Source: Ruditapes philippinarum (lineage: Eukaryota). Taken from it: 64,000 bases of DNA. The translations under genes were made by a program, and so were the position numbers. Location of the stretch: contig NW_026866839.1 in assembly GCF_026571515.1 (NCBI RefSeq), forward strand, positions 1 through 64,000, written 5' to 3'. The notes beneath the pieces were generated by a model, which did not search any database, was not told the DNA's origin, and worked only from the letters and a program-made list of their open reading frames with translations. Shown one piece after another: positions 8,132 through 53,700 of the stretch (its first letter is position 1; every line of letters starts with the position of its first letter).

Positions 8132-10438
8132 ATGTTGTCTCCATTTCTGAAATACACTATATTCTGCGCGTTGTTCATTGGTTCAATTAGAAGCTGGGAT
8201 CCAGATGCTGGCCTCATCAAGTCCTATACGAAGTTACATAACGTTACAGTCCAAGCATCGTCTGGTACCCATCCTGAAAATGTTATTGACAGTAACGACA
8301 ACACGAACTGGGTATCAGCGCACTGTTTACCATACGGGTATCTGAATAGAAATGATGTTAATATAATTTTTGGCGCGTGCAAAACTGGCGCGTGCTTATC
8401 AAGTGGGAATTCTGGGAATGGTCTCGGAGTCGCGACAGACGGAAACCCTTATACGGCAGCGCACGTGCAGAAAAACGGGTCATCAGCGTTTCTTTCTGTG
8501 GATTTAGTAAATTCCCAAGTTTTGCAAATAATTTCAGTCGGCGGGGTGTTTCCAAGTCCTACACATCTATATGTGTATGAAGTAACAAAATTTGGCTCTC
8601 AAAAACATTTACTGAAAACTTTTACATCCACTGATAATTATAAGAATATTAATATTCCTGGAACGAACTTCACAGTTAACAAACTAGAGCTCGTTTCTGA
8701 TTCAGGTTTCACTGTAAAGGACATGGGTGCAATTGGAGAAAATGGGTGCACAGAGCATATAACAGTTGATCTTGGTCATGAACGCAGCGTCGGTACGATT
8801 CGAACACGCCACTGGGCCGGAAGTAATGCGGCTACAAAACTTGTACTTAAAACATCAACAAACGGACATATATGGAATATGGTTGCTGATTTAGACCCAA
8901 ACGCTGTACACGCCGTCACTACACGTATTCAGCCAGCTGATATTCGTTACATTACTTTAGAATACAAAGTCCATATGGTTAATCATAAAAAGGTTTATTG
9001 TTTTGAAGTGGATGCTTGGGACGAAAACGGCATATGGGGACCTGAAATATCCGCTAAACCACAGGTTAACACATTTCGAGAAATCCTCGGTGTGAACGGG
9101 ATCTGGGGCTGGGGAACAAAAAGTTACAGTGACAAATTAGGACCTAACGAAGGACCTTTGTTATATAGTGAAGTTGCAAGTCACGCGCGTAATTATCATA
9201 ATCTCGTCTGGGACGTGACTGATCCCGATCTTGACCCTGAATACGATGCAATGGCAGCCGGGCATGGAACACAAGCAATGTGGTGGTTGAACTGGGATAC
9301 AGAATACCGTGCATGGAATGCAGCAAATTTAACCGTAGATATTTCCATACAATTCACAAATAAAACAGTACCGGAGAGCAAATGGAACACACCTGAGCAG
9401 TCTGCTTTTCACTACGGGCAACAGGTAGCAAAACATTTTGGTTCAGTTCAGGGCAATGGTCTTGTTCAAGCAGTCGAGGTCGGCAACGAACCATGGGACT
9501 ATAACGCTGCATTTTATGCCTCGGTCTTAAAAGGAATGGCAAGCGGTCTTAAAAGCATGGATAACAAATTGATTGTTATTCCTGGTACTTTCCAGGCCGA
9601 GGATAAAGACCACGAAAATACTTACATTGGTACCCGGGTTCTTCCGGAAGTAGCGGACAATATAGATGTCATTAACTGTCATACTTACAGTTTTATCAAT
9701 GATGACGCAGGTATACGAAAAGGAACGTATCCAGAAAATAAACTGTCCACATTTAATAACATCCGACCAATAACAAGATGGCGGGACACAAACACACCGA
9801 AGAAACCCATATGGGTTACAGAATGGGGATGGGATTCTGATGGTGTGGGAGAACAGTGTAGAGGAACAGAATGTGTAAGTGAGCGTGCACAAGCTGTGTA
9901 CGCTGTACGAGGTCTTTTATTGCTGGCAAGGTCAAATATTGAAAGAGCCACGTGGTATTTCTACGCCAACACCGAATGTGATACTTTATTCTGCCGCAGT
10001 GGACTCACTTCGTCTCACAAGAATAATTTTCAGAAGAAAGCAGTATTTTACACATTTCAAAAATTCTTACAGTACGTTGGTAACACTTACTTTCTTGGTA
10101 TTATCCAAGAAAACGACAACGGTTTTGTTTATGCTTTAAGTGACAAGCCACATGCATGTTTGGAAAATGCAAGCGTCTCTGACTTGCTTCAACATGCATC
10201 GCACGTAATCGGTTGGCTTCCGGTTGATATTAGTAATAAAAATTCAAGACAAACCACATTACAACTTCCGGCGGAAACACAAGTATCATTTGCATGGAGA
10301 ATCGCCGGAAGTTCAAATGATCGATTATTCAAGACGACAGATTATCAGCAAAGCGGCAATTCACTGGAAATAACTTTAAAAACTGAGCCTTTGGTTTTGA
10401 AATTTAACCACAAAACTATCACAAGTATTGTAGGGTGA
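8132..10438 (+). CDS. Secreted clan GH-A glycoside hydrolase (GH39/GH5-like TIM barrel) with N-terminal F5/8 type C (discoidin/CBM32)-like domains, 768 aa, single coding exon
   Basis: Hydrophobic signal peptide. Discoidin motifs 'ASS..PENVIDSNDNTNW', 'ITVDLG', 'STNGHIW', 'RYITL'. Acid/base motif 'VEVGNEPW', 'DVINCHTY', nucleophile motif 'KPIWVTEWGW'. Uninterrupted ORF. Confidence 0.85.
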   Translation: MLSPFLKYTIFCALFIGSIRSWDPDAGLIKSYTKLHNVTVQASSGTHPENVIDSNDNTNWVSAHCLPYGYLNRNDVNIIFGACKTGACLSSGNSGNGLGVATDGNPYTAAHVQKNGSSAFLSVDLVNSQVLQIISVGGVFPSPTHLYVYEVTKFGSQKHLLKTFTSTDNYKNINIPGTNFTVNKLELVSDSGFTVKDMGAIGENGCTEHITVDLGHERSVGTIRTRHWAGSNAATKLVLKTSTNGHIWNMVADLDPNAVHAVTTRIQPADIRYITLEYKVHMVNHKKVYCFEVDAWDENGIWGPEISAKPQVNTFREILGVNGIWGWGTKSYSDKLGPNEGPLLYSEVASHARNYHNLVWDVTDPDLDPEYDAMAAGHGTQAMWWLNWDTEYRAWNAANLTVDISIQFTNKTVPESKWNTPEQSAFHYGQQVAKHFGSVQGNGLVQAVEVGNEPWDYNAAFYASVLKGMASGLKSMDNKLIVIPGTFQAEDKDHENTYIGTRVLPEVADNIDVINCHTYSFINDDAGIRKGTYPENKLSTFNNIRPITRWRDTNTPKKPIWVTEWGWDSDGVGEQCRGTECVSERAQAVYAVRGLLLLARSNIERATWYFYANTECDTLFCRSGLTSSHKNNFQKKAVFYTFQKFLQYVGNTYFLGIIQENDNGFVYALSDKPHACLENASVSDLLQHASHVIGWLPVDISNKNSRQTTLQLPAETQVSFAWRIAGSSNDRLFKTTDYQQSGNSLEITLKTEPLVLKFNHKTITSIVG

Positions 10439-39468: not shown

Positions 39469-40526
39469 ATATTATCAATACATTAAATCTACAACCGGTT
39501 CATAAAACTAAACAATCCCCGGGACACTAATGATTGATCTCTGTATAACAGGATAGGTAAAATCTAGATAAAGATGATGATACATTGATGTAACATCAAA
39601 ACATTCGTACGTACATCCTGTTTTAAGTGTCTCTATATAAACATATTTGAACTGAATATGTGGCACATATGATTGTATATAGTTTGTAGGTTCAGGGGAA
39701 ATTAACTTGTTACGTTTTTATGTTCATTTTTATAACCAGAGTATGTTTTTTATTAAATCTTTTTTTTTCCTTTTTTTATTGAGCGATAAATGATACAGAA
39801 TTATAACAAAAAATGTGAAGATGACTTTTTAAATCTAGAAGAATTGTTATACTGAATTTTGCAGCCAAAAAGAGTATATCAATTGAAAAAATTTTAGGGG
39901 TGTTCTCAGAGAACTTAAAAAAGTATCTTCTAATCAATAAATATAATATTAATATTCTGTTTTTTGTTTTTTTATTTGTGCATGCATGCGTGCCAGTGTG
40001 CGTGCGCTTGTGTGTCCTTCCAATTTGTATTTAGTCATGTAATGGACTATATTTGATATTTTTTATTTTCAGATAAACATGTTGTCTCCATTTCTGAAAT
40101 ACACTATATTCTGCGCCTTGTTCATTGGTTCAATTAAAAGCTGGGATCCAGATGCTGGCCTCATCAAGTCATATACGAAGTTACATAACGTAACAGTCCA
40201 AGCATCGTCTGGTACCCATCCTGAAAATGTTATTGACAGTAACGACAACACGAACTGGGTATCAGCGCACTGTTTACCATACGGGTATCTGAATAGAAAT
40301 GATGTTAATATAATTTTTGGCGCGTGCAAAACTGGCGCGTGCTTATCAAGTGGGAATTCTGGGAATGGTCTCGGAAACGCGACAGACGGAAACCCTTATA
40401 CGGCAGCGCACGTGCAGAAAAACGGGTCATCAGCGTTTCTTTCTGTGGATTTAGTAAATTCCCAAGTTTTGCAAATAATTTCAGTCGGCGGGGTGTTTCC
40501 AAGTGTCACAGGGTGAGAAAAATGTG

Positions 40527-40599
40527 CAGCCTGACCGGGACTCGAACCCGGGACCCTCGGAATACCGTACCGCGGCTCTACCGACTGAGCTATCCGGCC
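40527..40599 (-). ncRNA. tRNA-Lys(UUU)-derived tRNA-like sequence in the TRIM LTR (repeated at ~40778-40850, ~41028-41100, ~41279-41351); not a decoding tRNA
   Basis: GGCCGGATAGCTCAGTCGGTAGAGC...GAGGGTCCCGGGTTCGAGTCCCGGTCAGGCTG. A box, B box, D arm and T arm are intact. The anticodon arm is mismatched and lacks U33. T5 run lies 4 nt downstream. Confidence 0.75.
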
Positions 40600-41235
40600 G
40601 CTTACACATCTTCTCTCCCTATATAGTGAACAGTTCTGAACCGTGACATACTCCCCTGCTATATTGAAATTCATCCTCGAATTTCTAAGGTTACAGAGCA
40701 ATGTGAATTAAACTCTAAGCTATATTCAGTCACGGTCCCCCTTTGGGCACCACATGTCACAGGGTGAGAAAAACGTGCAGCCTGACCAGGACTCGAACCG
40801 GGGACCTTCGGAATACCGTACTGCGGCTCTACCGACTGAGCTATCCGGCCGCTTACACATCTTCTCCCCTAAATAGTGAACAGTTCTGAACCGTGACATA
40901 CTCCCCTGCTATATTGAAATTCGTCCTCGAATTTCACAGAGTTACAGAGCAATGTAAATTAAACTCTGAGCTATATCAGTCACGGCCTCATGTTGGGCGC
41001 CAAATGTCACAGGGTGAGAAAAATGTGCAGCCTGACCGGGACTCGAACCCGGGACCCTCGGAATACCGTACTGCGGCTCTACCGACTGAGCTATCCGGGC
41101 GCTTACACATCTTCTCCCCTATATAGTGAACAGTTCTGAACCGTGACATACTCCCCTGCTATATTGAAATTTGTCCTCGAATTTCACAGAGTTACAGAGC
41201 AATGTGAATTAAACTCTGAGCTATATTCAGTCACG

Positions 41236-41253
41236 GCCCCACGTTGGGCGCCA
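41236..41253 (-). other. 18-nt primer-binding site complementary to tRNA-Lys(CUU) 3' end (second perfect copy at 41487-41504)
   Basis: TGGCGCCCAACGTGGGGC is the known Lys1,2 PBS and sits 2 nt after the LTR-terminal CA. Confidence 0.9.
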
Positions 41254-41552
41254 AATGTCACAGGGTGAGAAAAATGTGCAGCCTGACCGGGACTCGAACC
41301 CGGGACCCTCGGAATACCGTACCGCGGCTCTACCGACTGAGCTATCCGGCCGCTTACACATCTTCTCCCCTAAATAGTGAACAGTTCTGAACCGTGACAT
41401 ACTTCACCACAATATTGAAATTTGTCCTCGAATTTCACAAAGCTACAGTGCAATGCTAATGGAACTCTGAGCTATAAGCAGTCACGGCCCCACGTTGGGC
41501 GCCAAATGTCACAGGGTGAGAAAAATGTGCAGCCTGACCGGGACTCGAACCC

Positions 41553-41797
41553 ATGACAACAGCTCTCGCTAAAAGTTCTCATTTCTTGTGCGCATGCGTA
41601 AAGGTTAGCGTGACCGAATTCAAAAATGAAGTGAATGAGGCCCGTCAACGTGTTACAGGTCAAATGAAGTTATTAGTATGAAGTTGAATAATGATATGAA
41701 TGATTGAAAAAGAGACGATAGGGGAATCATGGGAATGATATAGAGTATGGGTATGAATTACAGAGTATTCTAGCAAAGACAAAATGACCCTGTGACA
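41553..41797 (-). repeat. Truncated Gypsy 3' LTR (U3 side), preceded on the minus strand by PPT ggcggggaagta (41798-41809)
   Basis: 41556-41797 matches 50558-50799 with one substitution seen (gttattagta vs gttataagta). Confidence 0.9.
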
Positions 41798-42837
41798 TAC
41801 TTCCCCGCCAAGGATAAAATGGCGTCCCGACATTTTCAACTCATAAACAAAAATTACTGATACCTGCATATATATCAAAAACCATACTGTCTAACTACAG
41901 TAGAACTAATACTAAGGACATGGGACTCGTTAAAGTACTTCTGTCCTAACAGTGAAATTACCAATAAAGGTAATGTATACTGCTTGAAAATGCTGTAAGG
42001 CATTAACAACCAGAAAAGTGCCCGAAGCACTGTTGGGAATGGTGAACGCGTTCTTTGGGATTGTGAACCATGCACGTTAGTACACTGACTCATCTACAAA
42101 ACTGTAGAACTTGTGTTATGTTTTCACATTACACAATATTCAAAGTAACTCTTTCAGAGTAAATAAAATTTGTCAAATTTCTTTGAAGAAATTTTACAAA
42201 TCGGTTAAATACAAACCATACTTACAAATATATATGACGAAACCCTACACTCATATGATAACACATATGAATAAACACTAATCTCAAACATCAGTAAACC
42301 AACACTGACAATTTGAAATAAAGATTAATATACAAAACTCAACTGAAACAATTTATTGTTCTCATCTTTTGTAAAACAATTTACAAAAAATGACAAAATC
42401 AAATTTGACATCTGCCTGAGAATCTGTACTACCGTTTCCTACTCAAATTCCAATCATCAGTCATCCAGCGCCCCACTGTGTTCCTCAGATGTATGTCTAT
42501 GTTGTTTCATACTGTTTTGGTGACACTTTTGCTTGTGTCCCTTGTTGTTTTCTCGTCTACGGTAAGTATCTTCCCCATTGCCTCTAGTTTTTATTTCTTT
42601 GATTAACCCCCCCCCCCTTCCCCCGGTCTCCTGTCCCTTTCCCCTTTGTGGGCCTATTATTATTTTCTTTGAATTCCTAATCAGTTACAAATTATTTATC
42701 ATTTAATGATTAACGTGTCGTTGCCCTGTCCTTTTTATGTTTGGGGTCCGCCTGGGCTCCTTGCCATTGGTTCTTGTTGCTGGGTCATATGGGGGTTGCG
42801 TTCATTGAACGCCGCCTTTCCTTGTTGATCTTGTTTT

Positions 42838-45800
42838 TCATATTTTCTCTCTTACTCTAGAAGTTCTTCGTGGAAGAAAAGGTGGAGCTTCCGGTCTTAA
42901 CAAACTATTACCTGTACGTCTTGCAGGAATTACATACTTATCAGATTCCGCGGATACGACTGATGGATTGTCTGAAATAGAGGTTTTAATGGAAGTACTC
43001 GAAGACTCAGAAGATTTAGGTGCTGCTGTGTCTGAAAAGGAAAGAGAATTGACAGGAGAACTTTGTTGAAAATTACCATTACTGGGAGAGTGATGTGACA
43101 GTCGTTTCGGTTCCTGTAGCGGGAGACCCATGAACGAAAGTAGCATATTACGGTGAAGTAATTTTGGTGCATCATCACTATCTTCCGGCTTAACCTGAAA
43201 TATAGGTAAATCTAGGTTAGGCTGATCAACTACAATGTAGATAGTTTTACTCCAACGATTAGCTAACTTACACTTGCCTTTTAAACCAACGTTTCTCACC
43301 AATACACGGTCACCTGGAACAAGGCGTACTTCCCGAACACGCAGATTGTAACGCTTCTTGTGTCGTTTCGCTTGACGTTTCGCCTCACGACTAGCAACTC
43401 TGTAAGCGAAATTCAAGCGCTTCCTTAAGCCTTCAACAAATTCAGCTGGCTTCTTGGTGTGAAAAGAAATGTCTGGGTCGATCCCGAGGAAAGCGTCTAA
43501 TGCAAGGCGAGGATGGCGCCCAAACATAAGAAAATGTGGTGTCAGACCTGTCGTCTCATGCCGAGTTGAGTTGTATGCATGTACTAGAGCTGGTACATGA
43601 GCTTTCCAATTCAGCTTCTTTTTATCCTCCAAAGTACCTTGCATATTCAGAAGTGTCTGGTTGAATCTTTCAGGCATTCCGTTACCCTGGGGATGATAAG
43701 GCGTAGTCCTAGACTTAGTGATGTTAGCAAGCTGACATAACTCCTTAATAACCGCTCCATCAAAATTCCTGCCTTGATCACTATGTAGGCGACTGGGGAA
43801 ACCATAATGACAAATGAAATTATCAAAAAGTGCTTTCGCCGTGGTGCGTGCCGTTTGGTTCCTAGTCGGTATGGCTTGTGCATAATGGGTAAAGTGATCA
43901 GTGATTACTAACACGTTCTCATATCCACCTGCTAACATCTCTAAGGTCAAAAAGTCCATGCAGACAAGCTCTAGAGGATAAGAAGAATGGATTGGAATAA
44001 GTCCTGCAGAAGTTGACAAAGGTGTTTTCCGCCGAATACAACGAGGACACTTCCGTACTCGAGTTTCAACAAAACCATCTAAACCTGGCCAAAAGAAACG
44101 AGATTTGATGAGGGAATTGGTTCTGTCAATACCTTGATGTCCGGCATTGTCATGGAGACCAGTGAAAAACCATATCCTTAAATGAGTCTGGCAGAAACAA
44201 GCTGATCTACGGGATGATTACATACCTGACCATGACGATAAAGTATACCATCCTTGATAAAAAGACTGGGCCACTCTCGAAGGTATTGACGAACAGATTC
44301 AGTTTCCCGTGAAGAAAGTCTTCTAGTTGGTTTATGACCAGTAGAAAAGATCTGTATAAACCTTGAAATTGTAGGATCTTTTGTCTGTTCCAGCTTCCAA
44401 TCAACATCACTAAGGTAGTCTGATGAAACATCAGTAGTTATGTCAACAACTTTCTGACTCATAGAGATACATTCAACAGCAGGTAATTCCTTAATATACA
44501 TACAACCTTGTATAATAGCCTTGACAGCGTCATTGAAAACCACAGTTTCAGATGAATTAGGAACTCTTGAAAGAAAGTCTGCATCTATGTTTGAACGTCC
44601 AGCACGATACTGTAAGGTGAAGTTGAAAGATGCTAACGCAGCTAACCATCTATGTGAAGTTGCATCTAGTTTGGCGGAAGAGAGCACATACGTTAATGGG
44701 TTGTTATCTGTACGAACTTTGAAGGAGTTACCATACAAATAATCGTTAAATTTGTCAACAACAGCCCATTTCAACGCAAGAAACTCTAACTTATGAGCAG
44801 GATAATTTCGCTCATTAATACGTAACCCTCTGCTGGCGTAGGCGATTACGCGTTCTTGACCGTCCTGCTCCTGATAGAGGATCGCTCCTAAACCGGAAGT
44901 ACTTGCATCGATGTTCAAGATGAACGGCATTGTAAAATCGGCATAGCCAAGAATAGGAGGAGTAGTCAACTTCTCAATGAGTTGTTCATATGCCTCTTGT
45001 TGATCTGAATTCCAAGTCCAAGTAGCTGCATCCTTCTTACTCTTACCTTTAGTGTTTGTCGGGTGTCCAGCAAGGAGGTCATTCAAAGGCTTGGCTATAC
45101 TAGCATAACCGGGAACAAAACGACGATAGTAGCCGGTAAAACCTAAAAAACTGCGAAGATCCTTAAGACACTTCGGAACGGGCCACTCCTTCAAAACTCT
45201 GGTCTTCTCCGGGTCAGTCTCCACTCCGTCAGCACTAACAACATGACCGAGATATGTGACACGAGGGAGGAAAAACTCACACTTGCTGCCTTTAAGCTTC
45301 AAACCAGCTTCCTTGAGGCGTTGAAAAACAGCATCAAGTCGTTTAAAGTGCTCATCTAACGTCTTGGAATAAACGATGACGTCATCCAAATAAATCAAAC
45401 ACTCCTTTAGATGAAGTTCCCCCATACATCTTTCCATCAGGCGCTGGAAGGTGGCGGGAGCGTTGGTTAGTCCGAATGCCATCCTTTCACACTCATAAAA
45501 ACCAAGTGGGCCGACCGAAAAAGCAGTCTTGGGCTTGTCAGACTCCTTCATGGCAACTTGCCAGTAACCCGATCGTAGGTCAAGTTTGCTGAAGATTTTG
45601 GAACCTGCGAGGGAATCAATGGTTTCATCAATCCTTGGCAAAGAGTAGGCATCAGTAACTGTCCGACTATTCAACTTTCTGAAGTCTATGCAGAACCTGA
45701 GCGAATTGTCTTTCTTGCGAACAAGGACGACGTTACTTGAGAAAGGGCTTTTGGATTCCCTAATGGCTCCTGCAGCAAGCATATCTTGGAGATGTTCCCT

Positions 45801-46829
45801 AACCTCTTCATACATACCAGGAGGGATGCGACGATAGGGGTCCTTGAAAGGCTGTGGATCAGTCAAGTTGATCTCATGCTCAACAAGATTAGTGCAGCCA
45901 AGGTCTGTAATACCAGTAGAAAATATACCTTTCCATTTCTCGAGGAATTGTGTAGCGTCTCTAAGATGATCTTGTAATAAAGTGCTCTTGGATAAGTCTA
46001 CTCCTAAATCTGCCAAAGACATATCTTTAGTACTGATATTAGACGATGTGGCTTCCAAAGGGTCAACTGATCGAACAACTTTCACATCTTGAAGAAGGCA
46101 GATTGAACTTTTAGGCATGATACGAACAGGTCTGACACTCATGTTACAAATGCGAACCGGAACTTTAGAGAAGGAACGGCTAGGGTCAACTTCAACAAGG
46201 CGAGGGCAAACATTGAAAGAGTGCAAGTTCTCATCATCCTCTGTAACACCATGTCTAATGGAATGACTTCCACGAACAATACCTGGAACAGTACAAACCT
46301 GAAAAGGCTGAATATACATAGGTCTGGTGATAAAAGCCTTCACCTGAACTGCAGTGTTATCCGGAATAGAAGAAAAGACTTCACCCCATGGAGATGGAAC
46401 TGAATCTGGTGTGGTAATACATCTCTTGTAGTGGCTAGTAACATTAGTACCAATAATAAGAGGTATAGACTTGGAATAAGAAGTATCAGGTACTATCAAC
46501 ACAGGAACAGAGACAACAGAATCTGAAGAAAGACAAGGAACAGAAATATCCAGGATAGAGTAACCAATATAAGGAATAGATGAATCATTTGCTCCTTTGA
46601 CACAGAAATCAGAAATACTCAACAGCTCTGGACAAGGATCTAAAGATGTAAAGTAAGAATGAGCAAGAGTTGTGACCATAGAACCAGAGTCTAAAAGTGC
46701 TGTAGCAGGGCATCCATTAACAAGAACATCTGTTTCATTGGAATGTCCAACCAAAGGGATACTTGGTGGGCCTCTCTGACTGGGCGGTCCTCCTACTGGC
46801 CCTTTGGTGGAGGAGCCTGCTGGTTTAAA
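42838..46829 (-). pseudogene. pol: Gypsy pol (protease, RT, RNase H, integrase), frameshifted between RNase H/tether and the integrase zinc finger
   Basis: PR 'ALLDSGS', RT 'LRFCIDFRKLN...YLDD', RNase H 'IDASTSGLGAIL...LEFLAL...TDNNPL', IN 'HSDQGRNF...PQGNGMPERFN'. Two single-T insertions at ~44196 and ~44166 break 'QLVLPDSFKDMVFTGLHDNAGHQG'. ORFs 44178-46754 and 42838-44019. Confidence 0.93.
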
Positions 46830-48147
46830 GGCTTATCTGTCTTGGATGGGGTAGCAGAGTTAGAACTTGATGGTGGTTGCGGCTCTGTCTCTTGACTTCG
46901 GATGTCAGTACCTCTACCTCGCCATCGGTTCCCATCTGACCTATACCTATTCTTCTTGACATCATCAAGGTCTCTTTCAATGCGAGTGACTCTGCTGTTC
47001 AATGTCTTCAACTGAGCTGTAACATCCTGTAACTCCTGTAAAATTTTGGATTCAACAGAGGTGTTACACTGTCTTACATCCTGCACTTTGGACCTGTCTG
47101 AAGAATTAGAAGGAAAAGAAGAAGTAGAAGAAGTGGAAGATCTATCCCTGGTAAAGGTACCTGATGATTTAACTCCTTGTTGAGCCAACTTCATCTCCTC
47201 TTCAACAAGTCGCAACTCTCGCCTAAACCTTGTATAATCAAGTTCTGCCTCAAACTTGTACCTTGTGGCGTTCTTCAAATCCTGGTTCCTTAGTCCAGAC
47301 CACAATCTGTTCCTCAACATGTCATCCCGTGTCTTTCTATCGAGTGTGATTTGGGAATCAACAAGAAGATGTTCCAATCGAAGACTATAGTCGACAATTG
47401 ATTCACCCTCCCGTTGACTTGCAGAGTAGAATTGCTCTTTCAGCCTCTCTGTTGATGCCACATTACCATAAGTTGCATCCATTTCTCGAACGATTTCATC
47501 CACAGTCGCCCACTCCCCAAGATGTAACAAAACTGATCTGGCCTTCCCACGCAGACTGCGCCGAATCGATTCCAAAATGGAATGTTCAGAATACATACCG
47601 CTTTTGAGAATACAGTTGACTTCATACTTCCAAACAACAAATTCCACATCTTCTTTCTTCAATTCCCTGAAAACTGAGGTAATTTAGGAAGTCTCTGTGG
47701 TGGAAAATTGTAAGGACTGCTATAAGAATCATGCTGTGGGAGAGAAGCAGATCTGGGAAAGGATTGTGATAATTCTTCAAACTCAGGCCTAGAATAATAA
47801 TCAGATTTTCTGGGCAAGCTTGAGCCAAGAGGGGTGGAATCGAAATCAGGACGAAAAGAAACACGACTCTGACGCCTATCAACAAAGGGTGACGGGGCAC
47901 TTTCATGAATAGAATGCAACCTATGAGGAGATAACACAGGAGGAGAACGATCACGATGTCTATGTCGGGACTCCCTATTAGGTGTATGTGTATCAGGATC
48001 AGCATCAGTGGAGAGTGAACGTCTATCAGTTCTAGGTTGCACTGTATCAACAGTATAACCAGAACTCAAAACACGTCTCTAACAATATTCCAGATCTAAC
48101 TCATCACGACTATCTTTTCCTCTAGGTGTGGTATCGTCATTATCCAT
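46793..48147 (-). pseudogene. gag: Gypsy gag (PNMA-like capsid), disabled
   Basis: 'LPKLPQFSG/KKEDVEFVVWKYEV...IRRSLRGKA...Q.EGESIVDYSLRLE' is typical of PNMA/Gypsy gag. 1-nt deletion at ~47665. In-frame TAG between the ATG at 48147 and ORF 47659-48069. Confidence 0.85.
46823..46829 (-). other. Putative -1 ribosomal frameshift heptamer T TTA AAC joining gag to pol
   Basis: X XXY YYZ heptamer at the gag end. The -1 frame is open for 25 codons into the protease ORF at 46754, and GC-rich sequence follows. Confidence 0.7.
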
Positions 48148-49421
48148 ATTGATAATAACTGACATAACGTGTCAACAAATCAACAACAACAACTTAGACT
48201 GATCAAAATAAATAAAATGAAGGGCACTTCTTACTTGAAATATTATTCCAAATAAAAACTTTCAAATGAAAATAGATAAACTCAACTAATACACAAAAAT
48301 AAATTTTTGTTCACAAGATGGCATACATTGTACACCATACACAAATATTGCAATTGAAATTTGTAATGGTAATATGTATATCTAGCAGAATTTACACACC
48401 AGATGAATTTTATTTACCAAAGACAATTCAGGCCTTCAGTAAATGAATAATTAAAACACACAAAAATGATGTCCCATATTGTACACCATATAATTTTTTT
48501 TCTTTACAAACAAAATAAATATCACATAAATAAACTTTCAAATTTGCAGCTTTTATGTGCACCAATTAAATGTCTGTAAATGCAAGCACTATATTCAATG
48601 CTGGTAATTCCTTTACACTGTACTAACTTCTATAGTTTTCCAATGTGAGAATGTATGCAATATATAAATATCAAGTCCAGTACTGTATCCAACTTGTAAT
48701 AAAATTGATTGGATTTCACCTACCAAACAATTCACAAGGGAAATTCAAATAACAATGAAGACAATATATGCACACACTACTTTCATATGACTGCTATTCC
48801 CAAATGTCTTCAATAATCACTTGATTTAATTCAAACTAGAGCACAATGTTTCATGTACTTTCCTGGCTAAACCAGTACTGTAAAATTCACAACAACAAGG
48901 ATTCAATTGTACCACACTATAATACCTGGTCCAACTAGTTGCGGAAAATTACTTCAATTTCCAATCTTCTCCGGAAAACTGCATTCAAAAACCCGAGAAA
49001 AGTCTAAACAAAATACAATTGTCACTGCAAGTACACCGCAATTGTAAAATGTTTTGTTTTTATTTCAAAAACAGTTCAATTTTAAATAAATGGAACAATT
49101 TTATACACGGACTAGAATATTTAAATAATATAAGAGATTTTATCAAAGGAGTATCTAATCCCTGTGATAAAATGTCAATTATTTTATAGTATTTCTTGTA
49201 TTTTGATATTTATTAGGCTTTCACTGTTATGACAGAAGTACCAACAAGTTGAACTAAACTATCATTACACTACAAGACTACATTACTGACTTTTTCATAC
49301 TCAGGCACCTAATACAAAACATTTTCCAAAGACACATAAATTTTATGAAGTGTATGTGAGCCGCCAAAAGATTAATTAATTAATAAAGCTTCCAAAATTA
49401 AATTTCTTCCAAAGATGAAAT

Positions 49422-49460
<39 letters not shown>

Positions 49461-50268
49461 GGTAATAGTACAAAAGTATGTCACAAGCTTTTCAATAAAG
49501 TGGACTGTTAAAGTGGGGATGTCTTACAGGAGTATAGTAAGAATAAGACAATACAGATGGTAAAATGGAAAGAAATGGCTTCTAAAGTATACATGTAGTA
49601 TCAGGGACCAGAAGAAAGATATGAAATGGTTATCTCACCAATCACCAGTTACCAAAATGAAAATGTATTAATGCAATGAAATCTGTTATTCTGTTAATGT
49701 AGTGCTCAGTGCCAAGGTTGACTTCCACACAATACACACAACTTCAATGCCAAACAACCTGTCAAATATAAACAATAACTGTAGAAATCTATGACAGTGA
49801 AGAAAAATATACAATGAACAATTCTTAGATGGTAACTACAAAGGATTTTAAGAAATGTTATATAAATCAATATATCTAAAGGTTAAATCACTAATTAATG
49901 TCATTCAAGTCAATGTTTATCACTGTAATCTCCTTCCAATAAAAATGTAAACAAAATGTCCAGAGGTAGAATCCAACGTTGAAAAATAAAGAAATCCTGG
50001 TCTGTTGAGTTTATGCACTAGTGTTTCAATGTAGAGTACTGTATATTAATTAAAGAGGCCTATATTTACTTTAGAAAGCTTTCATTTGATTGTTAAAACA
50101 AAATATAAAATTTTCGATACAACATGATGGACGGATTTCCTTGTTGACATTCACTATGTGACGTAAGCAGGGTTTCCCAATTCTCATTGGCTGATACAAG
50201 CGGGGAGAAAATCCACCCGAACTGAGTTCGTCCTCAACTGTTTCGCACCAAAACGTCCCAAATGTAAC

Positions 50269-50279
50269 ACTGGCCACCA
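50269..50279 (-). other. Gypsy primer-binding site TGGTGGCCAGT (tRNA-Ile(AAU)-like)
   Basis: Lies 2 nt after the LTR end (..CCGTGACA-TT-TGG). 11-nt complement to tRNA-Ile 3' ends of the ...ACTGGCCACCA type. Confidence 0.65.
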
Positions 50280-50281
50280 AA

Positions 50282-50799
50282 TGTCACGGATATACGTGAG
50301 TTCTCACTCGGGAGGATAGGGCGTTCAAAGAGGAACCTGTAAATATATTGTTGGCACACAATAAAATAGAATACGGAGTCAATGAAAAAAACAACAGCTC
50401 TCGCTAAAAGTTCTCATTTCTTGTGCTATTGATAATTCCAAGCGAAATACATACACATATCATAGTAATTCATGTTTACAATGTTTTATAACCTCAAATA
50501 TACCTGTAAATATATTGTTGGCACACAATAAAATAGAATACGGAGTCAATGAAAAAAACAACAGCTCTCGCTAAAAGTTCTCATTTCTTGTGCGCATGCG
50601 TAAAGGTTAGCGTGACCGAATTCAAAAATGAAGTGAATGAGGCCCGTCAACGTGTTACAGGTCAAATGAAGTTATAAGTATGAAGTTGAATAATGATATG
50701 AATGATTGAAAAAGAGACGATAGGGGAATCATGGGAATGATATAGAGTATGGGTATGAATTACAGAGTATTCTAGCAAAGACAAAATGACCCTGTGACA
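50282..50799 (-). repeat. Gypsy 5' LTR (518 bp) with internal 92-bp direct duplication
   Basis: TGTCAC...GTGACA ends. 50335-50426 is repeated at 50502-50593. Confidence 0.88.
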
Positions 50800-53700
50800 C
50801 AAGTCCTACACATCTATATATGTGCATGTATGGAGTAACAAAATTTGGCTCTCAAAAACATTTACTGAAAACTTTTACATCCACTGGTAATTATAAGAAT
50901 ATTAATATTACTGGAACGAACTTCACAGTTAAAAAACTAGAGCTCGTTTCAGATTCAGGTTTCACTGTAAAGGACATGGGTGCAATTGGAGAAAATGGGT
51001 GCACAGAGCATATAACAGTTGATCTTGGTCATGAACGCAGCGTCGGTACGATTCGAACACGCCACTGGGCCGGAAGTAATGCGGCAACAAAACTTGTACT
51101 TAAAACATCATCAAACGGACATATATGGAATATGGTTGCTGATTTAGACCCAAACGCTGTACACGCCGTCACTACACGTATTCAGCCAGCTGGTATTCGT
51201 TACATTACTTTAGAATACAAAGTCCATATGGTTAATCATAAAAAGGTTTATTGTTTTGAAGTGGATGCTTGGGACGAAAACGGCATATGGGGACCTGAAA
51301 TATCCGCTAAACCACAGGTTAACACATTTCGAGAAATCCTCGAGGTGAACGGGATCTGGGGCTGGGGAACAAAAAGTTACAGTGACAAATTAGGACCTAA
51401 CGAAGGACCTTTGTTATATAGTGAAGTTGCAAGTCACGCGCGTAATTATCATAATCTCGTCTGGGACGTGACTGATCCCGATCTTGACCCTGAATACGAT
51501 GCAATGGCAGCCGGGCATGGAACACAAGCAATGTGGTGGTTGAACTGGGATACAGAATACCGTGCATGGAATGCAGCAAATTTAACCGTAGATATTTCCA
51601 TACAATTCACAAATAAAACAGTACCGGAGAGTAAATGGAACACACCTGAGCAGTCTGCTTTTCACTACGGGCAACAGGTAGCAAAACATTTTGGTTCTGT
51701 TCAGTGTTCAGGGCAATGGTCTTGTTCAAGCAGTCGAGGTCGGCAACGAACCATGGGACTATAACGCTGCATTTTATGCCTCGGTCTTAAAAGGAATGGC
51801 AAGCGGTCTTAAAAGCATGGATAACAAATTGATTGTTATTCCTGGTACTTTCCAGGCCGAGGATAAAGACCACGAAAATACTTACATTGGTACCCGGGTT
51901 CTTCCGGAAGTAGCGGACAACATTGATGTTATTAACTGTCATACTTACAGTTTTATCAACGATGACGCAGGTATACGAAAAGGAACGTATCCAGAAAATA
52001 AACTGTCCACATTTAATAACATCCGACCAATAACAAGATGGCGGGACACAAACACACCGAAGAAACCCGTATGGGTTACAGAATGGGGATGGGATTCTGA
52101 TGGTGTGGGAGAACAGTGTAGAGGAACAGAATGTGTAAGTGAGCGTGCACAAGCTGTGTACGCTGTACGAGGTCTTTTATTGCTGGCAAGGTCAACTATT
52201 GAAAGAGCCACGTGGTACTTCTACGCCAACACCGACTGTGATACTTTATTCTGCCGCAGTGGACTCACTTCGTCTAACAAGAATAATTTTCAGAAGAAAG
52301 CAGTATTTTACACATTTCAAAAATTCTTACAGTACGTTGGTAACACTTACTTTCTTGGTATTATCCAAGAAAATGACAACGGTTTTGTTTATGCTTTAAG
52401 TGACAAGCCACATGCATGTTTGGAAAATGCAAGCGTCTCTGACTTGCTCAAACATGCATCTCACGTAATTGGTTGGCTTCCAGTTGATATTAGCAATCAA
52501 AATTCAAGACAGACCACATTACAACTTCCGGCGGAAACACAAGTATCATTTGCATGGAGAATCACCGGAAGTTTAAATGATCGATTATCCAAGACGACAG
52601 ATTATCAGCAAAGCGGCAATTTACTGGAAATGACTTTAAAAACTGAGCCTTTGGTTTTGAAATTTAACCACAAAACTATCACAAGTATTGTAGGGTGAAA
52701 GAAACTATTGTGCTCATCTATTTTTCCATTTATTTTGCTGGTCAAATTATTAAATATATGAACTTATTTTGATTGAGCGTTTTGTCCTTATACTTGTATA
52801 CTTTTCCCTAAAATATCTCAGACAATCTAAACTCATTTAAAACTCTTGAACCTAAAGTCGTAATGATAAATGGAAAATGGCACCGTAATTTCTGATTTGA
52901 AAATAAAACACTTTGAATATTCGTTAATTTTATAAATTGTAATAATACAAATGTTGAAATATTGTTGTATATATATATTTCTACCAAACGACATTTTGTG
53001 AGTTATCACGCCTGAATATTATAGTACAATTGTATTGGAATCTTATGTCGATCTCAATAGTGTTCAGTGATGAAAACATTACTGTTCATTACATTACATT
53101 ACATTACATTACATTACATTAGTTGTTGTTGTTTTTTAACACTGATAAAATTGAATATAAAATGGTTCTGAATATATGTATTAAAGTAAATATACTTCAG
53201 TTTACCTTCTTTGTCAAAAAATAAATTCATGCACGGGTTATTACACGTGGGTCTCTAAATTGAGCATCGGTAAAAATATACACGAATTTAAGCTGATCCA
53301 AATGTGCACTTTAACCCCCAGACAATATGTGAAACCAAATGAGTTCTGACGTGTCAAAAAAATTCATGCTTAAAAAATCAAACAAACTCCTTTTGAAACA
53401 TTCATTAAGATTTTGCTTCAAACAACCAAATTGGCTATCAAATTACATCTCGGCTCCATATGTGCTGTAGAGATCCATAGGTGCATAATATAAAAATCAT
53501 CAAAACAGTTACGGATACCTTTTCATAAACCATTCAATATTTTATTCGTTTTTGTGTCATTCTGAAATAGGAAGTAATATTTGGAAATAATATATATAAT
53601 TTATTCAGTTGAAAGACGAAAAGATTTTTAACTAAAAACATGTCAACTAATAATTTAAGAAATTCCATATATAAGCGAACCTTTTTTTAATTTTATATTA

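Follow-up and report, generated by a model that had tools for sequence, protein, structure and literature searches.

The helpers of TRIMs (terminal-repeat retrotransposons in miniature) are rarely identified. TRIMs with tRNA-derived sequence in their long terminal repeats (LTRs) have been described as Helenus (TRIMp3) from pteriomorph bivalves and other animals (Kojima 2024, PMC10886601), and Gypsy helpers of the animal Helenus were argued there from similarity of the primer binding site (PBS) only, with no hybrids reported. In Triticeae, fused LTR daughter elements flanked by one target site duplication (TSD) have been attributed to abnormal strand transfer in a particle containing two RNAs (Sabot and Schulman 2007, PMC1950507), and inter-family recombination via cross-packaging has been reviewed (PMC6894440). 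Concatenated transcripts and template switching have been proposed as one origin of Cassandra arrays (PMC7215508), and from sugar beet, chimeras between TRIMs are recorded in which the LTRs come from another family (PMC13570524). There is precedent in this literature for deriving both complex LTR insertions and TRIM arrays from template switching (PMC1950507, PMC7215508). Here, we examine a 10,296 bp insert made up of a Gypsy element and an array of Helenus-type TRIMs. It is found at 40504-50799 in the first 64,000 nucleotides (forward strand) of contig NW_026866839.1 of the Ruditapes philippinarum assembly GCF_026571515.1, and this whole stretch is referred to below as the window.

The sense strand of the insert is the minus strand of the window, and all features of both elements are on that strand. 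Read in the sense direction, from 50799 to 40504, the insert consists of a Gypsy 5′ LTR, a TT spacer, a PBS, a leader of about 2.2 kb, gag, reverse transcriptase (RT), RNase H, integrase, a polypurine tract (PPT), a partial 3′ LTR, the bases CAT and the TRIM array, with a full Gypsy LTR at the left end and a full TRIM LTR at the right end. In window orientation, the tgtcac at 40504 is the terminus of a TRIM LTR and the gtgaca finishing at 50799 is the terminus of a Gypsy LTR. These ends are flanked by two plus-strand copies of CAAG (CTTG in element sense), at 40500-40503 and 50800-50803. Two paralogues of the left flank were found, one within the window (8203-8556, 99 % identical) and one elsewhere in the assembly (G000:C14408:257041-257394, 98 %), and both read ...ggtgtttcCAAGtcctacacatc..., namely the left flank, one CAAG and the right flank. 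In the window paralogue, this empty target site is at 8553-8556 on the plus strand, inside an intact 768-codon open reading frame (ORF; 8132-10438), and the alignment of the occupied locus to it stops exactly at 40504 and picks up at 50800. As the paralogues have a single CAAG and the alignment breaks at 40504 and 50800, the CAAG is a true target duplication around one insert. The possibility that the left CAAG is the mere edge of another TRIM unit (a unit reads ccaaAtgtcac) is ruled out by the empty sites. The 40504-50799 block entered as a unit, or at least fills one integrase-type target site with the exact LTR termini of two families. A template-switch complex insertion is recognized by two parent elements that lie together within one TSD and by an empty site that can be demonstrated, and this is the arrangement seen here. 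We think it rather probable that the block is a single integrant of chimeric DNA, formed when a Gypsy RNA and a multi-unit TRIM transcript were reverse-transcribed in one particle and templates were switched, and that this Gypsy family is a working helper of the TRIM despite the differing primer tRNAs.

An earlier note on this DNA, made from the sequence alone, had described one CAAG TSD around a Gypsy element and several TRIM units, a TRIM LTR end at the left and a Gypsy LTR end at the right, an abrupt switch at 41552/41553 into the T-arm of the tRNA-like sequence of the TRIM, and shared termini, TT spacer and PPT ends in two families that use different primers (Lys versus Ile-like). It had also predicted free-standing TRIMs with 4 bp TSDs, normal Gypsy copies with two LTRs and a junction present only here. 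Its coordinates were all reproduced, and these observations and predictions are borne out by the data given above and below.

Like the complex insertions of Triticeae (PMC1950507), this element has two fused parents that were inserted as one unit under one TSD. However, the Triticeae cases mostly involve related large elements joined via a shared LTR, whereas here an autonomous type of element, Gypsy, is joined to an unrelated miniature one, in an animal and at a non-homologous point, and a second class of hybrid, with the junction at the PBS, is present. Cassandra (PMC7215508) is also a TRIM carrying the remnant of a Pol III gene and also forms LTR-interior-LTR arrays, but its remnant derives from 5S and not from tRNA, and it has no known autonomous partner. 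The sugar beet chimeras (PMC13570524) are between non-autonomous families and not between a TRIM and a candidate helper. In a literature search, hybrids that join a Helenus to an autonomous Gypsy were not encountered. The novelty lies in structural evidence that directly links one Gypsy family with an animal Helenus family, despite different primer tRNAs.

The second class of hybrid was met while the flanks of Gypsy LTRs were being collected, and is represented by three more loci with the order Gypsy LTR, PBS, TRIM interior, TRIM LTR. These are C907 (TSD AATA, PBS TGGTGGCCAGTGTGGGGA), C1850 (TSD TACA, PBS purely that of the TRIM, Lys type) and C5222 (PBS TGGTGGCCAGTGTGGGGG), which is older and has a truncated TRIM LTR, and for which the TSD was not checkable. 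In all three, the junction is at the PBS, which is the landing point of plus-strand strong-stop DNA. The PBS match to the tRNA-Ile-like end is 17-18 nt in the hybrids compared to 13 nt in normal Gypsy copies, which is how a PBS copied from the primer would be expected to look; a crossover within GTGGGG, a stretch common to the Ile and Lys primers, would fit as well. All four hybrids, namely the window element and these three, involve the one Gypsy family. Genome searches, here and below, scored the best 40 candidates each, and the counts given are lower bounds. Among these candidates, no hybrid of the reverse kind was seen: a TRIM LTR end followed by the Gypsy PBS gave one weak match, with 2 mismatches, and the search for a TRIM PPT followed by a Gypsy LTR start returned normal Gypsy copies only. 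The 34 matches to a Gypsy PPT followed by a TRIM LTR start are TRIM PPT variants and not hybrids.

The TRIM array (40504-41552) contains four complete LTRs of 144-145 bp (40504-40648, 40755-40898, 41005-41148 and 41256-41399), four internal regions of about 106 bp (40649-40754, 40899-41004, 41149-41255 and 41400-41506) and a 46-nt LTR remnant (41507-41552) corresponding to LTR positions 100-145. Tandem Repeats Finder (TRF) reports it as 4.2 copies of a 251-bp unit at 40499-41552. Each full LTR includes a tRNA-like sequence in the sense orientation (40527-40599, 40778-40850, 41028-41100 and 41279-41351), which scores 32.6-44.5 bits with Rfam RF00005 (gathering score 29) and is also found by ARAGORN. 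It has A and B boxes (TAGCTCAGTCGG and GGTTCGAGTCC), a predicted internal Pol III promoter, and a TATA-like box lies about 25 nt upstream. Each interior opens with TT and TGGCGCCCAACGTGGGGC, the PBS, which in the 5′-most unit is at 41487-41504 and is complementary to the 3′ terminus of tRNA-Lys-CTT; in one unit of the array the PBS is decayed. Most interiors close with the PPT AGCAGGGGAGTA, and the unit adjoining the junction closes with a degenerate tract, TGTGGTGAAGTA. Within the array, LTRs differ pairwise at 1-6 of 144 nt and internal regions at 4-23 of 106 nt.

Free copies of this TRIM are non-coding and about 395 bp in total, with LTRs of 144-145 bp on either side of an interior of about 105 bp. 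There are thousands of candidate copies in the genome, including forms with two LTRs and arrays of 3 to 6 LTRs. Perfect 4 bp TSDs flank 6 of 10 complete copies or arrays, among them two 4-LTR arrays, and three more match at 3 of 4 positions. Judged from sequence, the mini-element agrees with Helenus (PMC10886601) in every defining feature that was compared, and a tRNA-TRIM is not in itself new. As in Helenus, two short LTRs (144-145 bp) enclose an interior of about 105 bp in a non-coding element of <1 kb, each LTR holds a tRNA-like sequence with A and B boxes in sense orientation, and the size is inside the range given for bivalves in Table S1. A PPT is present, the tRNA-Lys PBS after a TT spacer is shared with Helenus-3_CGi and Helenus-4_SaGl, and the 4 bp TSDs are shared with all animal Helenus. 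The supplement of PMC10886601 lists no family with the dimensions 145/105/395, and none of three test strings from the window TRIM occurs in its text. Two features differ from the Helenus account: the linked Gypsy uses a different primer, and TSD-flanked long arrays, with up to 6 LTRs, are common in this genome. Rearranged clusters are also common, with TRIM arrays that abut inverted or end inside LTRs (L043 1101-2401, L049 1231-2232 and L052 2001-2260). At G000:C11031:133557-133587, the reverse complement of a TRIM LTR start is directly before TT and the Lys PBS, placing an inverted LTR beside a TRIM interior.

The Gypsy element begins with a complete 518 bp 5′ LTR (50282-50799; TGTCAC...GTGACA), followed by a TT spacer (50280-50281) and the PBS TGGTGGCCAGTGT (50267-50279), of which 13 nt are complementary to a tRNA-Ile-AAT-like 3′ end. 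The gag region (46793-48069) is made up of two overlapping ORFs (47659-48069 and 46793-47662), the second of which encodes a capsid of PNMA/Ty3 type (Pfam PF14893, E 1e-07). The pol ORF (44178-46754) includes reverse transcriptase and then RNase H (Pfam RVT_1, 1.5e-34; RT_RNaseH_2, 1.7e-30), and after a break of about 160 nt a further ORF (42838-44019) encodes the integrase (rve; PF00665, E 9.6e-14). The order of capsid, RT, RNase H and integrase on the minus strand is that of Ty3/Gypsy elements; no Pfam model for a protease matched in the element. The PPT GGCGGGGAAGTA (41798-41809), which is identical to the tract before the 3′ LTR in 12 other copies, precedes the shortened 3′ LTR (41556-41797). 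This corresponds to positions 1-242 of 518 and has one mismatch to the 5′ LTR (position 124). The leader between the PBS and gag (48070-50266) is without long ORFs and contains a run of 31 T on the plus strand (49424-49454).

The family defined by the 518 bp LTR has at least 40 copies, including LTR pairs 6.5-10.3 kb apart, and the TT and PBS, as well as the PPT, are conserved across copies. Perfect 4 bp TSDs were found for six LTR pairs (6.5-10.3 kb apart) and three solo LTRs. An exact internal repeat of 92 nt in the LTR (50335-50426 and 50502-50593, 167 bp apart) is present family-wide; copy L040 (G000:C8505) seems to have an extra 167 bp step, and copy L054 is without positions 188-292. Two further copies, L024 and L028 (G000:C9729:33508-34014 and 41543-42049), are 5′ LTRs with a PBS, 8 kb apart and with nearly the same 25-nt left flank, which suggests a tandem duplication that included the element.

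The TRIM and Gypsy families have in common the TGTCAC...GTGACA ends, the TT spacer, 4 bp TSDs and near-identical PPT ends (GGGGAAGTA or GGGGAGTA). The shared sequence consists only of GTGACATTTGG (LTR end, TT and TGG) and AGTATGTCAC (PPT end and LTR start), and no extended similarity beyond these terminal signals was found between the TRIM and the Gypsy interior. The final 11 nt of the Gypsy PPT are matched by some TRIM PPT variants, e.g. AGCGGGGAAGTA. The TRIM PBS is complementary at 18 of 18 positions to the 3′ terminus of tRNA-Lys-CTT, as printed in the supplement of PMC10886601. The genome has a multi-copy tRNA-like 3′ end (...CCCCCACACTGGCCA) that fits the Gypsy PBS and differs by one base from the end of Aplysia tRNA-Ile-AAT in the same supplement. 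Many tRNA-like 3′ ends GGTTCGACCCCCACACTGGCCA are present in the genome, and the 18-nt complement of GGTTCGACCCCCACACTGGCCA plus CCA is TGGTGGCCAGTGTGGGGG, exactly the PBS of C5222. Seven of these ends, about 1.28 kb apart at G000:C13702:101487-109877, are probably a tandem cluster of tRNA-Ile-AAT-like genes. The same Ile-type PBS is found in oyster Gypsy-167_CGi and oyster Helenus-5_SaGl (PMC10886601 supplement). A different miniature LTR family in this genome (G000:C7107:59057-59633 and C13235:89564-89844), with repeats every 256-280 bp, has the LTR end GTTACA, TT and a full tRNA-Ile-type PBS, TGGTGGCCAGTGTGGGG; its primer is the same as that of the Gypsy family. In the window, the candidate helper and its parasite do not share a primer tRNA: the TRIM uses Lys-CTT and the Gypsy a tRNA-Ile-AAT-like primer.

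This difference leads to the first of four alternative explanations, namely that the structure is real but the Gypsy family is not the usual helper, with TRIM RNA occasionally cross-packaged by several LTR families and the main helper being Lys-primed. A shared PBS is the basis on which Helenus and Gypsy families are paired by Kojima (PMC10886601), the PBSs differ here (Lys versus Ile), and there are thousands of TRIM copies compared to only four hybrids found. However, the TRIM and this Gypsy family have their terminal hexamers, TT spacer and PPT ends in common, this is the family found in all four hybrids, and when the genome was searched for TT and the Lys PBS preceded by an LTR end different from T-GTGACA, the matches scored were TRIM variants and the C1850 hybrid only. 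We regard this explanation as unlikely.

The remaining alternatives concern how the two parts came to be adjacent. At the junction, position 242 of the Gypsy LTR, immediately before a run of seven T (T7), is followed by three filler bases (41553-41555; CAT in sense) that match neither parent in register, and then by position 100 of the TRIM LTR, in the T-arm of the tRNA-like sequence. The two sides share no homology. Among the candidates scored, the exact 120-nt junction around 41552/41553 was found only in the window. Two possible causes for the position or the filler were considered and rejected. A templated origin of the filler would draw on a TCAT that lies beyond the T7 run of the Gypsy LTR, 7 nt further on, and would involve contraction from T7 to T1, which is possible but unconvincing. 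A stall of m1A58 type in the T-loop does not fit, as the retained part of the TRIM includes the whole T-loop. The match of a 636-nt contig (run X8) ends at 40504 and the contig has another 303 nt after that point, but with an identity of 97 % this contig may represent a paralogue and not an empty allele.

Three filler bases without microhomology are typical of end-joining, and two linear cDNAs, a Gypsy broken in its 3′ LTR and a TRIM array broken in an LTR, could have been joined by the host and then integrated once via their intact ends. The single TSD and exact ends would fit this equally well. It would need two breaks, a ligation and an intasome on ends that came from different molecules, and it does not predict three hybrids exactly at the strand-transfer point, the PBS. 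We therefore think it quite improbable, and even then one integrase would have accepted both ends and the helper link would stand.

Still less likely is a series of events after integration, in which a TRIM array inserted into an older Gypsy insertion with the CAAG TSD, or vice versa, and the block was then trimmed by deletions. While nested insertions and deletions are common in this repeat-rich genome (for example, the inverted and truncated arrays L043, L049 and L052), one deletion must here end exactly at the last base of a TRIM LTR beside an old copy of the TSD, and another must remove half a TRIM LTR together with 276 bp of Gypsy LTR, although only the 6 bp terminus is shared. A chance 4 bp match would occur in 1 of 256 cases, no second TSD was found inside the block, and other hybrids have clean TSDs of their own (C907 and C1850). 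An assembly artefact, in which a TRIM array and a Gypsy LTR that lie apart in the animal have been put together in the contig, is very improbable: high-copy repeats lie on both sides of the junction and the assembly is fragmented (15,874 contigs), but misjoins arise in shared repeats, so that one driven by repeats is unlikely where the two sides share nothing, and outer flanks that are contiguous in two paralogues, with a matching TSD, are not expected of a chimeric contig.

The preferred explanation, a chimeric DNA integrated once, would begin with a Gypsy (Ty3-type) genome and the transcript of a multi-unit Helenus-type array in the same particle, where the polymerase switches templates. Two routes can be envisaged. 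In route a, plus-strand extension would leave the Gypsy minus strand at the start of the A7/T7 run and continue on minus-strand DNA of the TRIM array, and the branched product would be resolved after integration. In route b, minus-strand synthesis would move from TRIM RNA to Gypsy RNA, and the normal plus-strand strong-stop DNA of a second Gypsy template would provide the intact 5′ LTR. In either case, one integrase, in the simplest view that of the Gypsy family itself, would process the two ends, which have the same terminal hexamer, and join them to the target. Every route considered needs one integrase complex that accepts a Gypsy end and a TRIM end, and all routes but end-joining need both nucleic acids in one reverse-transcription complex.

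In standard LTR replication, the template for the 5′ LTR is the right end of the same minus strand. A minus-strand path from the TRIM array onto the Gypsy RNA, which was the path given in the earlier note, would on its own yield a chimeric 5′ LTR, whereas an intact one of 518 bp is seen. Of the mechanism in that note, the single integration of a hybrid cDNA is upheld by the empty sites, and the path, incomplete as given there, is at most possible. Its further claim, that the Gypsy family is linked to the TRIM as helper, is strengthened by the three additional hybrids with PBS junctions, two of them with their own TSDs.

As the units of the array differ (≤4 % in the LTRs and about 20 % in the interiors) while the Gypsy LTR parts differ at 1 position in 242, the heterogeneity of the array predates the insertion. 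The array would have travelled as an array, most simply via a read-through transcript. For the PBS hybrids, one aberration would be enough, namely the landing of a plus-strand strong-stop DNA of the Gypsy on the PBS of a minus strand of the TRIM. The strong-stop DNA would end in a copy of the tRNA-Ile primer (...GTGGGGG) and the TRIM PBS is ...GTGGGGC/A, so the shared T-stem stretch could give a paired 3′ end, and 6-7 nt of terminal identity may help the transfer. These hybrids would be a simpler product of the same co-residence as the window element. Their PBS position favours an origin in reverse transcription, while the window junction has filler and lacks homology. That Gypsy proteins mobilize the TRIM is something we infer only from the hybrids with a single TSD.

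Several points weigh against a template switch with this Gypsy family as helper. By the usual logic of PBS matching (PMC10886601), the differing primers argue for a Lys-primed helper. Filler without microhomology fits the end-joining of two DNAs as well as it fits a template jump, and the sequence cannot tell on which strand a switch happened. The searches gave no donor array in which the units have the same order; the best-scoring other array, C6582, is 94 % identical and was rejected as the source because there is no unit-by-unit diagonal. The pol-integrase region is broken in the window copy of the Gypsy, and this copy proves nothing on activity. Among the reads listed, in which repeat copies swamped this stretch, no record runs across 41553, and searches that scored 40 candidates do not prove that the junction is rare.

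It seems to us an evenly balanced proposition that hetero-LTR integrants of this kind are footprints of co-reverse-transcription and the first to identify the autonomous partner of an animal Helenus TRIM. The partner would then not need to share the primer tRNA, as the T-stem stretch common to Lys and Ile would be enough for heterologous plus-strand transfer, and TRIM arrays would be copied and inserted as multi-unit cDNAs in the particle of the helper. Hybrids with a single TSD would provide direct and searchable evidence for whose particle and integrase handle a TRIM, and in this case the partner that they indicate is one that would have gone unnoticed by PBS matching. The window element is also relevant to the origin and spread of TRIM arrays, in that a heterogeneous 4-unit array would have arrived in one integration.

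The insertion is in addition a concrete case of a composite element disrupting a gene, one paralogue of a secreted discoidin-domain gene. In the intact paralogue (8132-10438), the 768-codon ORF starts with a sequence resembling a signal peptide and encodes an F5/8 type C (discoidin) domain. In the interrupted copy, split into 40079-40503 and 50804-51764, 141 codons are open before the site and about 320 in frame after it, followed by an early stop. These paralogous genes are carried on a large, diverged segmental duplication in the window (1-27400 and 33800-61600), with 80-96 % identity in blocks, and only the second of the two copies holds the insertion.

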